Positions 2,697 through 24,100 of a DNA stretch of 64,000 nucleotides are shown here, in pieces. The stretch lies in NCBI GenBank assembly GCA_977030845.1, contig OZ365114.1:14384001-14448000 (forward strand), read 5' to 3'. How positions within the stretch are numbered: the stretch's first letter is position 1; every line of letters starts with the position of its first letter. Made by a program: the position numbers and the translations under genes. Below the pieces are notes generated by a model. It ran no database searches. It was not told the origin of the DNA and was given only the letters and a program-made list of their open reading frames with translations. Source of the stretch: Fimbriosthenelais zetlandica. Its lineage: Eukaryota.

Positions 2697-3180
2697 TTAA
2701 CCATAACATTGCCTCCGTTTATTGCTGAAGGAATTACATGTAAAGGGTAAATTGAATCCCACTGATTCAAGTGCTGCTGAGCATGATCTGGTTACGGTCC
2801 TACAGAGGGTCCGGCATGGCCTGAAAAAATAAAAAAATATATATATCATATAAGTTCATCGCATCATGTCTATTTTCAGAAACAGTTCTGTGTTTCTAAT
2901 CATCTAAATCAATCAATCAATGAATAAATTAATCAATTAATCAAGCAGATTCATACTCACATTATTAGCGTGCCATCCTCGCATTTTGGTAGTACAAGGG
3001 AGCAGACGAATTTCTTTAGATTCTCACCACATGCAGTGTTGACAGGCAGCATGAAATTGTTTAGCCATCCCATAGCCTGTGACTGTGAAGTGTGGTTGAA
3101 GTAATTTGGGAATGTAACACTACTGTAGTCTACCGCACCGTTACACGTAGAGGAAGTATTCATGGCTTCACATATATAAG
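2697..3180 (-). CDS. Frizzled CRD 4, C-terminal (exons 2961-3180, 2697-2820)
   Basis: 10 Cys; [32 protein letters not shown]; ends ...KRRQCYG-TAA. Confidence 0.9.
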
Positions 3181-6100
3181 CTGTGAAAAAAGGATGGTTT
3201 CATTTATAAATATACAAGATATAAAACTGAATAATTACGTTAATATACATGTTAACATGGGTTCTTAAGGCTTAACTCTTTTCAGAATTTACTACATCAG
3301 ATCTGAGGAATTGCAAAATCGATGAGTATTACATTTTGATTCTAAATACAATTCTACAATTTGATTCTAAAGATAAATAATCTTCTGTGAGAGCTGTATC
3401 TGAACCATGCCAAATGCGTTGAATGCGCATTGATAAGCATTAAATTATGTCCTTGTCACATAATTTAACTGGCATTCCTATGTGATAGAAAGGCCTGTCA
3501 TGCAAAAAGGAGGTGTGCTTATGTCTTAAGGTCATGCATTGGAAGACCAGGAAAAAATATTCAATCCTAAATATTTCTGAGCTATTCTTGCATTATCATA
3601 GTAAATCTAAATAGAGAGGGAATTGTGGGGACAATATTCATGCACAAATCTAAGGCTAAAATAGGTAAGATAGAATCAAGATGACATCATTGTAATTTAC
3701 CCTTTATGTGTTTAAATCCTAATGGTCATCAAGCACGCACGTTAATACTGGTGATTTATTTACGGAATTGAATCATTATTTTACATCTTTAATGCTTGTT
3801 AACCATTAGGACAGCCTTCTAGCTTACCCGATGAGTTGCCTTGAGTTCCTACTCGGCCTGAATTAGTTTTATTCCGAGGAGTATCTGGCACCACCCTCAT
3901 GGTTTCTGTTGTTGTAGTAGCATTTTGAATCTCTGTTGTGGATACTTTGCTCTTGTCAGCCTTCTCAGTAGTTGAGATTGTTGGTGAAGTTGCAGCAAGT
4001 TCCATAGTTGTTGTTGCTGCCATTGATGTAGTGGCAGCCTCAGAAGTTCCCTGTGATGTTGGTGTTGTGCTTTTAGAAGGGCTGGTAGGTTCTCTGGTGG
4101 TAGTACTAGTACTTGCCATAGTGCTAGGCTCCATGCTTTCTTCACTTGTCATTTTGTCCATGGGCTTGGTGGTGGTAGTAGATGCAGTTCGAGTGGATGT
4201 AGTAACAGTGCTTGCCTCAGGAGTTGTTGATGGTAAAGGAGTTGTTGATGATAAAGTAGTAGTTTCCTTAATTTCATGTTCAGCAGTGACATTTTCCGCT
4301 TTCACTTTGGGTTCAGTCCTCTTTGCTTCTTCAGTTGTTGATGTACTTGAAGACGTTGACATAGGCATGGAAGCAGTTGGAACAGTTGTTGAGGTTTTGG
4401 ATGTGGTTGTCTCCGGACTTTCTGTCGTAGTGGTAGACTCTAGGGAAACACTAGTCGTAGTCTTGGTATCATTCTCCTCAACATAGATCACATCAAGTGT
4501 GGTTGACCGAGTCATTTCAGGCATAACTGAGGTGGTGCTTGCTGTTGAAGATATACTCGTTGTTGGTTTCATACTCGTTGTTGTGGTAGACTTTGTTGTC
4601 GATGGTGATGTTGCTGCTGTTGTTTCTGCTGCTGTTGTACTTTCTGTTGTTGAGGGAAGTGACGTTGTAGGTGAAGTTTTAACTTGGGTAGTGATAGTTG
4701 TTGTAGATGGTTTGCTGGGACTTGTTGTTTCAGTTGTTGTCTCTGAAGTGACCACTGGTGTTATCACAGTGGTTGCCATCGAGGTACGATTTTGAACCTC
4801 AGGTAAAGTTGTTGTAACCATCTCGGTGGTTGTGGTAGTTTCTCTAGCAGCAGTGGAAATTGGACCAGGAGGTATCTTAATGTCAGTTGTTGTACTCATC
4901 TGCTCCACTGGCTCTGTTGTTTTACTAGTTGTTGACTGACTTGCTGATGTAGTAGACATGGATATAGTAGTTGTATTCAGCTTCTCAGTAGTGGACTCCA
5001 CTGTCTGCTTCTCTGGTGATGTCTTCACTGAGACGGTAGTAGTCGTAGTTGGGGACGTAGATGCTGAAAGATTGGCTTTTGGGGTTACAAAATCTGAGAG
5101 AGAAGAGGGAGAAGTTTCATTAAACCTTAAACCTACTGAAACTGTGGAAACATTTAGACTTTCTGTGGTGGTGTCAACTACTCCAGAAACCTGTGGGTGT
5201 GACGGTGACACAGTGCTTTGCACTGCTTTTGCTGACGTGATATCAGGGACAGTGGCATTAGAGGTGAGCAGACGGTCAGGAAACGTGTCCGTTGTCGTCT
5301 GAACAGTGACAGGGATAATTGGGGTGGTGGAGGTTACATTCTGATCTAAAGTTGAAGTTTTTACAGGAATAGTTTGGTTTTCTGGCACCATTCCTGTAGG
5401 TAATGTAGTGGTGATGTTCATAACTCCTGTTGTAGATGGAGTTAATGTAGTTGTACTGACTGTTGTAGATTCGTCAGGTTTAGTTTTGGAAAAGGATATT
5501 GTGGTGTTCTCAATGCCTTTTGTGCTACTACTATAAGGAGTTGTACCTGTGGCATTCGTAGTTGCATCTGGCAGACTTGTGGTTGTAAGGTTGGCAACCA
5601 GTCCAGTACTAGTGGTAGTACTTGAGCTTAGAGTAGTTGTACTTGAAGTATCTGTGGATTTGGGTTCAGTACTAGTGTTTGAAGGGCTGAATGTGGTGGT
5701 TGATTCCAATGTATCCGAGACATATTCAACAGCTACTGTAGTACTCATCGTTGTGGTGTTAGCTTGCGATGCAGTTGTATTCATGACTTGCACAGGAATT
5801 GTTGGTTTCGTTGACATATCTTTTGTTTCATTCACTTTTGTGGTCATCGTTATGGGCACAGTTGTAGTATTAACTTCCAAAGTAGTCATTGTAGGTGTAG
5901 TTGAATATGGCTTAGTCATATTGAATACTGTTGTAGTATTCTCCTGGGGAATGGGTGTTACTGGTGATGTGGTGGTAACTTGCGTTGTACTTTCTGCTAC
6001 AGTTGAGTTGATGTCCATAGTTGACAATGAGGGTGTCGTGGATTTAGTTTTGGTCGTGTTCATTCCGGATGTGACGTTGGTATACATTCCATCAGCCCGG

Positions 6101-21100: not shown

Positions 21101-24100
21101 GGCTGCCTGGAAATCGATTTTTAAAAAAGAGCTGAGTATGTGGGCCTTGACAAGTCCAACCAACCCAGCCCTAAATCTGGCTTGATCCCTGATTTATGGT
21201 GTGTATCAGGCTGTAGCAGTGTTCTCCATTTAGCCCTGTCGATACCAACGCCCACCTGTAATGAGGTATAGGGCCTACCACTGTGTTTAGGATAGCGTGA
21301 TTCGAGAAGCAATCTGCAAGCTCTACCAACTACCTTCCCGTTTTACAGTAGTACAGGATATTTCCCTGTTAAACTGAGGGTATCTGCCACGGAGGCCCAG
21401 CATGAACTATTCACATTGTATAATTGCTGCAATATCTCAAAAATATGTGCGCACAGGTGATCAATCCCCTCGTGGACCATGGAGTCATTTCATAACAAAA
21501 TTGAATTTAAATTGAATTTAAATGCTGACCAAATTTTATAAGTGCTGTTGAAAAACTTATTGGGAGAATGTTTCAGAGGTAATTGCAGCAATTTCCAGCC
21601 AAAATTAGAAGGAAAATGCTGCGCAAGCAGTATTGTTGTTGCCTGCTTCCACTGCATTATCATCAGTGGTACAAATATATGGTTCAATCAAGCAATGAAA
21701 TTTACCTGTTTGTGGAAGCACAATTTTAACTATTAGATGTCTTTCTAGTTTTAGGATTGTTTGCTTTTATCCGATCAACGTATAGACAGTAAAATACAAT
21801 TCACAATTTTACTCTCATTTAGTTCGAATAGTGCAAATAGATCATACTTACATAGGAAATAACCGCCGACAGCTAAGCCTACCAAGATAGCTAATATAAC
21901 GATGATTAGGATTATTCTTCGACAGTTACATCCTTTAGCTTCTGTGAAGGTCACTTTGTGGGGTAGATCCTAGAGCAAGATGAAAGACAGATAAATGTTA
22001 GTAAGTCACTATGTAGTAACATTTGTAAAACAAACAAAAAGAAACTGGGGGACATACCTCGGTGGGAATGCAGACATAAACAAGAGTTAAATTTGTCTTT
22101 TTTGTTTGTAAACGTTTGCTTGACTGTGTCACTGTAGTGGTCTGTATTATAATTGGTTTTGTATAAGATAATATTGATAATGTTTATGAAGGTTGTATAC
22201 ATGAGTGCAGACGAGTAATATGAAGCAAACCAATACAGATTACATAGATTTAATTATAAATATTTGTTATTCATTAATCAATTTAAATCAAAATAAATTA
22301 AGAACTGCAAACTGAAAATGGAATTAAGATGGACAAAAAAATTATTTGCAAATTATACTGTTACTTGTTTCTATTTTTCATTAGCGTTAATATTCAAATT
22401 GTAACTGAAACCAAGGAGGCATCAATTGTACGCTTGGATATTCTACCTTAATATTAACGAATCAAGGAGTATCTGATAATACAAGACAAGTGCACTTATT
22501 CAAAGGTGGCGATAGACAGAGCATAAGGAATATTTGATAAGCCGAAAGAGCGTGAAATTTGTTTTTTTCCATATTGTGTCCAGGCAAAAAGGCCTAACAC
22601 TTGGGGAAAAATCTGCCTTTAGACTTGCAGAGCATAAATCACAGTGCTTATGGTTTAAGTGTAAAACCTCTTAGAATTTAACTTGCAGATGGCGTTCATT
22701 GCTAATTTAGAGTAGAGTGATCTTATTATAGCAGATCATGCAGAGATCTTTTAGATTATCATACAAGGTTTATTAGTGATTAGGTCCATATCAAGTCGGC
22801 CAACAATAGAGCTAACATGCAAGATTTGGACAGAGAATGGATGACGAGTTAGGAGTTACCATCACCAATATTCATGTCAGTTTTCAGAATGAATTATTAA
22901 TGTTATAATATATGGATGTCATTGTTTTTCTTGAAATCTTAAAACATCTTTAACCCTGAGACAAATATACCTTTGCTGTTATCGTTTTTCTACATATTAG
23001 TTGTTTTCACATCTTAAAATATTTGTGGTGGGTTTCAGTAAGTTTTGTCTAAATTAGAATGAATTAGAGCCACATCCAATGTTTTTTTTGTTTCCAAACC
23101 GTGTTTAATATTCTCTATGTGGGCCATGCAGATTATTAACTTAATCCAAAGGGCAAAGGAAAAAAACTACAAACAAAATTCATACTAATATAAAAAAAGA
23201 TAAAATAATAACGTATGTGTTTATCAATACATATCAGAATTAAAACGCAGCTACCCGCTACCCAGACAAGTGATTATCATTGTTGGCAGATAATGATATA
23301 ACAAAGTTCCAAAAAGACATCAGATAAGAGTCTGATAATCATACTGACCAGACAACAACATCTCTGAAAGAAAAAAATATATTCAAAAAAGCTGAGAAGA
23401 GCGACAATAGAAGAAGAACCAATGCTGTTTAGTCATTAAAACAATGAGTGTTTTGTAAACCACTACTTTATACAATTTACCTTGGTGGTGGTTGTATCTT
23501 TATCTTTGGTGGTCTTCACTCTTTTATGTCTTTCGAGGAAAATCATTTTCCTTTTTGTTATATATGGATTATTATAATTCCAAAATATGTGACTGTGTTT
23601 TATATAAAATCCTAGAATGTTGAATGAATGTTTTCTGATGGACACTGCTCTGCCAGGTATGGTTTCTAGCCTCCAAGACCAAATACTAAACTGATTCACT
23701 TTGTTTCCACTAATACAATCGGCTATATTAACCCCCATCCCTTTATGCAAATATAACCCCCTCATTACTCAGCCCCTGCCCATAGACTTGTACATCCTCA
23801 AATACAGGACACAATCAACCAAGTTTCAACATCAATTTCAATACACATTTTTCAATTAAATCTATTGAGGAGTTTCCGAACAGAATTCATTAACAAGATC
23901 CATTATTATTCCTACTAAAATTAAACAGAAATTATTTTCTATGTTAATATATTGGACAAATCTATGAAAAGGCTAGTCTCATAGGTCTGGAAAACCCCAA
24001 GCTTGTGAAGTGTGGGGGCAACAAAGGCAATGCAGCAATCAGGGGTAATGAACCATGTAGAGCCCTGGTATCCGGAGCCCCCATTAGGTGCCACTTTACA

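Follow-up and report, generated by a model that had tools for sequence, protein, structure and literature searches.

Contig OZ365114.1 of Fimbriosthenelais zetlandica carries, within a 64,000-nucleotide (nt) stretch (forward-strand positions 14,384,001 to 14,448,000, hereafter the window, whose own numbering is used throughout), an intron-rich eukaryotic gene. SRCR, Frizzled cysteine-rich domain (Fz CRD), SEA, Ser/Thr-rich and hydrophobic segments follow one another in a regular series on the minus strand, from 21969 to 2697. An initial annotation of this DNA had described a signal anchor, a SEA domain, four complete 10-Cys Fz CRDs, nine 6-Cys SRCRs and two Ser/Thr-rich (PTS) regions, spread over 38 in-frame exons and lacking any protease, in an architecture that was not recognised. 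After an independent reconstruction of the gene, the best reading is that its product would be a non-catalytic protein of the SRCR superfamily, mucin-like and anchored in the membrane in type II orientation.

The exon chain and its domains

The gene model was rebuilt from minus-strand stop-free segments of the three-frame translation, which were chained via canonical GT-AG sites under phase constraints. For this purpose, 33 peptide cores were used as anchors, and each gap between them was scanned for frame-keeping GT donors and AG acceptors. The rebuilt model consists of 37 GT-AG exons (7,971 nt, 2,656 amino acids (aa)), running from 21969 to 2697. The only stop of this frame is the TAA at 2699-2697, after 2,656 codons, and neither an internal stop nor a frameshift was found. 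Thus, the single open frame of the initial annotation is borne out, but its 38 exons become 37 in our reconstruction, two of which are weak. On balance, the locus probably represents a single intact minus-strand gene encoding, as modelled, a protein of ∼2,700-2,800 aa. The features are the following, in the order of transcription.

26292..26654, minus strand: candidate first coding exon; ATG at 26654 (or 26633), donor after 26292; putative cytoplasmic tail of 114-121 aa
21848..21969, minus strand: signal-anchor exon; acceptor at 21969 (score 4.0); a basic CRR stretch ahead of a hydrophobic helix of 23 residues
20319..20362, minus strand: linker exon of 44 nt (phase 2 to 1), doubtful; poor coding score (-0.42)
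20092-19980, 19812-19745 and 19589-19414, minus strand: SEA, three exons; G/SVVV motif at the start of the third
17823..18194, minus strand: PTS1 exon; 124 aa, 60% Ser+Thr, 12% Pro
16891-16640 and 16547-16446, minus strand: Fz CRD 1, two exons; 10 Cys; Pfam Fz E 4.3e-14 for the first exon
15972-15822 and 15700-15507, minus strand: SRCR1; Pfam SRCR; internal intron in phase 2
15343-15196 and 15073-14868, minus strand: SRCR2; Pfam SRCR; internal intron in phase 2
14658..14753, minus strand: PTS2, short linker exon, from the exon chain
14423-14276 and 13793-13612, minus strand: SRCR3, from the exon chain, Pfam and alignment
13385-13196 and 12956-12775, minus strand: SRCR4, from the exon chain, Pfam and alignment
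12497..12562, minus strand: PTS3, probable short linker exon, phase 1 to 1; optional
12300-12147 and 11935-11790, minus strand: SRCR5, degenerate; 6 Cys; Pfam E 2.4e-4 for the first half
11658-11511 and 11367-11180, minus strand: SRCR6, from the exon chain and alignment; matches solved CD163 and DMBT1 SRCRs
11024-10880 and 10592-10402, minus strand: SRCR7, from the exon chain and alignment
10210..10275, minus strand: PTS4, short linker exon, from the exon chain
10118-9974 and 9765-9572, minus strand: SRCR8, from the exon chain and Pfam
9380-9233 and 9115-8928, minus strand: SRCR9, from the exon chain and Pfam
8559-8319 and 8142-7988, minus strand: Fz CRD 2; Pfam Fz E 3.8e-12 and 5.1e-5; nearest solved CRD is that of sFRP3
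7760-7538 and 7398-7244, minus strand: Fz CRD 3; Pfam Fz E 7e-14 and 1.4e-4; solved-structure matches
7023..7049, minus strand: micro-exon of 27 nt preceding the mucin exon, phase 1 at both ends; doubtful and optional
3828..6128, minus strand: mucin exon; 767 aa, 47% Ser+Thr, 0 Cys, 28 NxS/T sequons
3180-2961 and 2820-2697, minus strand: Fz CRD 4; Pfam Fz E 2.5e-10 and 1.4e-4; stop TAA at 2699-2697

A phase-compatible, top-ranked splice pair was present for nearly every gap between the anchored cores, and only two gaps had no convincing direct junction. Between the first and last SEA exons there were zero direct pairs, and the gap was closed by the well-scoring middle exon 19812-19745. Between the transmembrane (TM) exon and the first SEA exon a weak direct pair was found (combined score 3.2, donor after 21813); this gap can be crossed either through the doubtful exon 20362-20319 or by joining the weak donor after 21813 to 20092. 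Two exons with phase 1 at both ends are optional, 12562-12497 in a PTS linker and 7049-7023, and the frame holds with or without the former.

All module boundaries are in phase 1, and the intron within each of the nine SRCRs and within Fz2, Fz3 and Fz4 is in phase 2. This regular phase pattern is the signature of exon shuffling and of tandem duplication of two-exon units, for which an origin by chance is impossible. Introns mostly measure 90-500 bp; the longer ones (1.1-1.7 kb) separate TM from SEA, follow SEA or precede the mucin exon. A 23-bp tandem repeat (∼12 copies, 82% matches, 16053-16346), with an overlapping 30-bp periodicity, occupies a large part of the intron that separates the second exon of Fz1 from the first of SRCR1.

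A domain search of the translated exons, the check suggested with the initial annotation, gave Pfam matches to Fz, SRCR and SEA only. The first halves of all four CRDs match the Fz profile (E 2.5e-10 to 4.3e-14, profile positions 1-63 up to 1-80), as do the second halves of three of them (Fz2-4, profile positions 73/74-109, E 5e-5 to 1.4e-4). The second exon of Fz1 (FZ1-b, 16547-16446) has zero Pfam matches and is assigned solely by the joined alignment of the four domains. The CRDs are mutually 27-35% identical and, when their halves are compared with solved structures, the nearest are FZD receptors and sFRP3 rather than MuSK or Smoothened. For the SRCR halves, Pfam E values range from 1e-9 to 1e-14 (the best quoted for the superfamily test being 9e-14). 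All nine SRCRs are of the group A type, with six Cys, two exons and one phase-2 intron each, the fifth copy being degenerate. They share 21-45% identity with one another versus 40-55% with amphioxus SRCRs, and this closer relation to amphioxus copies indicates that the array is old and has been maintained.

The first SEA exon alone gave a Pfam E value of 2.7e-4. An independent SEA profile, for which eight Pfam-verified domains from other proteins were used, matched the spliced domain with 44.8 bits over model residues 60-152, spanning all three exons, which validates both SEA splice junctions. The GSVVV motif at model residue 118 is aligned with the GSV of other SEA domains.

The alignment shows ten Cys per Fz and six per SRCR. 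The total of 98 Cys is the sum of 4x10 (Fz), 9x6 (SRCR), three in the anchor exon and one in SEA, so that an LDLa- or EGF-like Cys-rich module is hidden nowhere in the model. Zero Pfam matches were obtained for the candidate 5' exon, the other long open reading frames (ORFs) of the window, PTS1, the middle and last SEA exons and the second half of SRCR5. Moreover, a domain scan of the window, plus strand included, found no further SRCR, Fz or SEA similarity, all matches lying on the minus strand between 2700 and 20000. No variable number tandem repeat (VNTR) array was detected in the mucin exon by Tandem Repeats Finder, which reported there a lone 18-bp x 2.6 stretch. Taken together, the rebuilt chain, Pfam and the Cys counts recover the domain set and domain order described initially. 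The reported lack of protease, LDLa, CUB and ZP domains likewise holds within the window, according to Pfam on the separate pieces, the Cys bookkeeping, the window scan and a scan of the downstream region.

Membrane topology and the 5' end

The exon at 21969 opens at an acceptor (score 4.0) and contains no in-frame ATG, and at least one 5' coding exon must therefore lie upstream of it. The span of 2697-21969 proposed for the gene thus agrees with the stop of the rebuilt frame but is too short at its 5' side. A Kyte-Doolittle hydrophobic segment of 23 residues extends from model residue 13 onward, with basic residues before it. Since disulfide-rich domains must be extracellular and the basic residues precede the helix, the upstream part should be cytoplasmic, which would make the protein type II. 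This agrees with the topology of the initial annotation, in which an N-terminal anchor preceded by basic residues is followed by the Cys-rich domains.

A candidate for the missing exon is located at 26654-26292. Its phase-0 donor has a score of 5.7, in the strongest class, and fits the phase-0 acceptor at 21969. The coding score is +0.25 bits per codon in frame versus about -0.3 out of frame, a value like those of the TM and SEA exons and above most control ORFs. The predicted product of 114-121 aa is acidic and Cys-free. As judged from these features, the chances that it is the first coding exon are about evenly balanced. Immediately upstream of the candidate there is a 55-bp tandem repeat (3.1 copies, 26671-26843), which would be part of the 5' untranslated region or of the promoter region.

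Relatives and comparison with known proteins

When the first exon of Fz1 was used as a HMMER query against 1.84 billion representative proteins, 414 matches at E<=1e-3 were obtained, and the architectures of the 150 best were compared using Pfam scans and source names. The top matches are invertebrate proteins with many Fz CRDs. The best annotated ones come from Branchiostoma and reach 35-55% identity only. XP_078670161 (Branchiostoma, 6,305 aa) contains five SRCR, 16 Fz and four SEA domains, together with DOMON, TIL, LDLa, EGF, MAM, thyroglobulin, NIDO, VWD and C8-3_MUC4 and a C-terminal TM, and is of a type I, MUC4-like design. The amphioxus protein XP_066276376 (3,573 aa) has Fzx8, SEAx4, NIDO and VWD. 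XP_066275077 (B. lanceolatum, 842 aa) is arranged as SRCRx3-Fz-SEA-Fz-Fz and clusters with CAH1257189 (amphioxus, 5,351 aa), which is automatically named DMBT1 and has 18 Fz. The SRCR8-SRCR9-Fz2-Fz3 block is colinear with residues 1945-2386 of XP_078670161 (34.8% identity over 477 aa), and the best single SRCRs are 53-55% identical to amphioxus SRCRs. A word-sharing protein search with the first-exon ORF of Fz4 yielded no candidate.

The protease-free combination of SEA, Fz and SRCR is, thus, already present in predicted proteomes, and this gene is unusual but not a new category. The initial statement that nothing matches the architecture holds for characterised proteins, since we found no characterised SEA+Fz+SRCR protein in the literature, only catalogue entries; it does not hold for predicted ones, given the Branchiostoma proteins. 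Similarly, the mix of SEA, Fz and SRCR without Trypsin, which the initial annotation proposed to look for, does occur in predicted proteins, but the exact domain order is absent from the 150 best matches. Proteins that consist mostly of tandem Fz CRDs are predicted in many invertebrates, for example in Penaeus chinensis (13 in XP_047484369) and Montipora (9 in XP_068736201), and models from Pinctada and Penaeus vannamei show 8-9 matched stretches; these look like an unstudied class.

Two unannotated contigs carry related DNA. Contig L001 (another species, ERR14368249) contains a counterpart of the first Fz1 exon, 60% identical in aa and bounded by splice sites whose positions and phase are unchanged; nucleotide similarity is confined to this exon and the flanking intron DNA cannot be aligned. 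In contig L002 (a second species, SRR30767268), a PTS-Fz-SRCRx3 block is colinear with PTS1-Fz1-SRCR1-3 at 37-40% identity. At L002 positions 196-864, a single open frame runs through a complete Fz CRD into the next SRCR, of which it covers the first half. This relative, the more distant of the two, therefore lacks the intron within Fz1 and that at the Fz/SRCR boundary, indicating that intron positions differ between lineages.

The contrasts drawn initially with Corin, MFRP, DMBT1 and the type II transmembrane serine proteases (TTSPs) are fair. The amphioxus giants, which are uncharacterised predictions, resemble this gene in combining SRCR, Fz and SEA, without a protease in the RefSeq models, and in the same GSV site of their SEA domains, and Fz4 shares subtype motifs with amphioxus Fz copies. 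However, they are type I, with a C-terminal TM at ∼6111, and have 15-18 Fz, whereas this gene is predicted to be type II and has four. They also contain a NIDO-VWD-EGF module, DOMON, TIL, LDLa, MAM and thyroglobulin domains, none of which occurs here, where a large mucin exon is found instead.

The corin-like TTSPs of Haliotis (XP_048248347), Pomacea (PVD38673) and Saccoglossus (XP_002736238) have the same stem of signal anchor, SEA, Fz and SRCR, in the mollusc and hemichordate order TM-SEA-Fz-LDLa-Fz-LDLa-SRCR-trypsin. Moreover, the SEA domain of Lingula XP_013385766, a 'corin-like' model with the order TM-SEA-Fzx4-LDLax8, is the best single-domain match to the SEA of this gene. With TTSPs this gene shares a single N-terminal signal anchor placed after a cytoplasmic tail, for which the upstream tail exon is required. 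Unlike Corin and other TTSPs, it has no LDLa, trypsin domain or activation site in the window, and it has nine SRCRs rather than one, four Fz rather than two, and two PTS/mucin regions.

DMBT1 (gp340, SALSA) is a secreted protein with 8-Cys, single-exon group B SRCRs, CUB and ZP domains. It resembles our gene in its tandem SRCRs spaced by Ser/Thr/Pro-rich linkers, in mucin-like glycosylation, which is predicted here, and in the acidic triad of several SRCRs. In contrast, the SRCRs of this gene have 6 Cys and two exons and are combined with a membrane anchor, SEA and Fz, without CUB or ZP. Mucins of the MUC1, MUC13 and MUC16 class likewise have PTS regions and a membrane-proximal SEA with G/SVVV; however, their orientation is type I, SEA preceding a C-terminal TM, and most of them have VNTR repeats and lack SRCR and Fz, whereas this gene is predicted to be type II and its PTS regions are non-repetitive. 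Finally, Apl065 of Acanthaster planci is a predicted protein of 1,894 aa with the order signal-Fz-SRCRs-LDLa-Fz, which appears in its source as a catalogue entry only (PMC10855680 supplement). Its multi-SRCR array is flanked by Fz on either side, and the entry lists no protease; it differs in its signal peptide, which makes it secreted, and in its LDLa repeats, and neither SEA nor mucin is mentioned in the relevant passages of that source (PMC10855680).

Ligands are bound by SRCR domains via a dual cation site. In SRCR8 of SALSA/DMBT1, this site is formed by D1019, D1020 and E1086 and by D1020, D1058, D1059 and N1081, and mutation of D1019 or D1020 abolishes the binding of very different ligands (PMC7043408). 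We mapped the corresponding columns via the CDD, LDD, NC and ED motifs instead of a numbered alignment, which makes the assignment provisional. The Asp-Asp...Glu triad is kept in five of the nine copies (SRCR1, 2, 3, 4 and 6), and SRCR6 retains all six cation-site positions; the site is partial in SRCR8 and lost in SRCR5, 7 and 9. Retention of the triad in these five copies makes the SRCR-binding part of the function plausible. The GRVEVxxxxxW motif, present in most copies, was rejected as support for binding of bacteria, because in SALSA structures it is a buried peptide and not a ligand site (PMC7043408).

Proposed role and competing readings

We propose that the N-terminus of the protein is cytoplasmic and that the remainder would be displayed outside the cell. 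SEA domains with a G/SVVV motif autocleave during folding and their two chains stay non-covalently joined. The SEA domain of this gene may thus cleave itself while folding, as in MUC1-type mucins and TTSP stems, leaving a giant ectodomain that is held non-covalently and could be shed. PTS regions are known to be densely O-glycosylated and rigid; here, heavily O- and N-glycosylated PTS regions would extend the protein into the glycocalyx. Through SRCR1, 2, 3, 4 and 6 the protein would engage polyanionic or repetitive ligands (microbial surfaces and matrix, for example) multivalently and in a Ca2+-dependent way, as DMBT1/gp340 does. For the four CRDs of FZD/sFRP type, the ligand would be a lipid-modified protein, a free lipid or another protein. 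Lipid or Wnt binding by them is possible; a link to Wnt, suggested by Fz-class sequence similarity alone, is speculative, as is a coupling of microbial sensing to Wnt availability. The protein may therefore act as a tethered, sheddable multivalent agglutinin or barrier mucin at an epithelial surface, with a DMBT1-like action and an anchoring like that of TTSP stems. Its origin could lie in a corin-like TTSP stem (TM-SEA-Fz...SRCR) without LDLa and protease, in which SRCR, Fz and mucin parts were expanded by phase-1 exon shuffling. On present evidence the gene is a lineage-specific product of such shuffling. We consider it quite unlikely that it belongs to an old, unstudied class of invertebrate surface mucins bearing arrays of 4-18 FZD/sFRP-type CRDs (amphioxus, shrimp, coral, bivalve), in which the CRDs would capture Wnts or free or microbial lipids at epithelial surfaces, so that the binding of microbes by a sheddable, SEA-tethered SRCR/Fz mucin would be linked to the local supply of morphogen or lipid.

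Several points weigh against reading the locus as one complete gene for a non-catalytic surface mucin. The splice junctions, the 3' end and the single-transcript status are computational predictions, and the micro-exons 20362-20319 and 7049-7023 are weak. The start codon lies outside the span first given to the gene, and the exon that would supply it is only a candidate. At the other end, the TAA overlaps a GT at 2701-2700 whose phase, 1, is shared by all module boundaries, and the first polyA signals after the stop lie at 1319, ∼1.4 kb downstream of it, and at 391. Among the best 150 of the 414 Fz matches, neither the exact order TM-SEA-PTS-Fz-SRCR9-Fz-Fz-mucin-Fz nor an annotated full-length orthologue was found. 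Ligand binding, SEA cleavage and glycosylation are deduced from sequence, and the motif positions used for the SRCR cation sites are those that we take to be equivalent, not ones read from a residue-numbered alignment. There is also a small chance that the gene continues beyond the window as a longer spliced form.

In that case, the window may hold the stem of a corin-like TTSP, with the last Fz exon spliced at the GT 2701-2700 to LDLa, SRCR or trypsin exons lying beyond the window start. We consider this unlikely, although the TM-SEA-Fz...SRCR stem is identical to that of the Haliotis, Pomacea and Saccoglossus proteins, the best SEA match is the Lingula model, and both the phase of the GT and the distance of the polyA signals would suit such a continuation. 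The frame ends as Q-C-Y-G-stop, with Y and G following Cys10 of Fz4, in agreement with the end initially placed two residues past the last Fz Cys. As a donor, GTTAAT is poor, scoring 0.3 versus 2-5.7 for the donors in use. In the 2.7 kb downstream (positions 1-2696), we found no credible phase-1 acceptor followed by an open frame, no terminal exon of >33 codons and, in a motif scan of both strands, no S1 protease motif, although introns of this gene are mostly far shorter than this distance. A Trypsin query taken from hit P0061 matched trypsin in other hit proteins. Moreover, known TTSPs place SRCR, LDLa or CUB beside the protease, not a mucin region followed by Fz, and LDLa is absent throughout the gene. 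A stop overlapping a phase-1 GT (2697-2702) would fit a terminal exon made by read-through of a former or alternative donor.

A low probability is likewise given to a computational fusion, in which the model joins alternative transcripts or at least two neighbouring genes of the same strand (for example TM-SEA-PTS-Fz-SRCRs and mucin-Fz4), or in which modules are skipped so that the 2,656-aa protein is never made. Gene-prediction fusions are reportedly a documented source of seemingly novel architectures. The symmetric phase 1-1 modules can be skipped or recombined without breaking the frame, the longer introns flank SEA on both sides and also precede the mucin exon, and the amphioxus relatives occur in many isoforms and conflicting models (X26, the 842-aa and 5,351-aa forms). 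However, the model contains neither an internal signal peptide nor a second TM or in-frame stop, and without a signal peptide or TM of their own the downstream parts could not be secreted by themselves. Exon density is uniform, on one strand throughout. Finally, the SRCR-SRCR-Fz-Fz and PTS-Fz-SRCR blocks are colinear in other species, which shows that the modules are parts of one whole. It is very unlikely that the locus is a duplicate in decay or without expression, a pseudogene in the making: SRCR5 is degenerate, SRCR7 and SRCR9 have no cation-site residues and the first recognisable exon has no ATG, but 7,971 nt are free of stops and frameshifts with all splice sites canonical, 94/94 domain cysteines are kept, similarity to the contig of another species is limited to the exon, and a plausible ATG exon lies upstream.

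If the gene is transcribed as modelled, a non-catalytic surface mucin encoded by it would indicate that a TTSP-type stem (anchor, SEA, Fz and SRCR) can stand alone. It would be a compact and well-defined addition to the SRCR/Fz/SEA mosaics, which have so far been seen only as conflicting automatic models in amphioxus and starfish. Many invertebrates encode multi-Fz-CRD proteins outside the Wnt receptor families, and what such CRDs bind is a real question, although this locus alone does not open it to direct testing. For binding tests, an ectodomain on the 2.7-kb scale with four divergent CRDs and five SRCRs that appear to be binding-competent would be a practical source of fragments. The understanding of Wnt signalling or of innate recognition is not changed by this gene.

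The rest of the window, from 27 to 64 kb, has no recognisable domain. It does contain, on the minus strand at 61262-61825, a Pro/Ser/Asn-rich frame of 188 codons with a codon score of +0.15 and zero Pfam matches, which may be an exon of a neighbouring gene.

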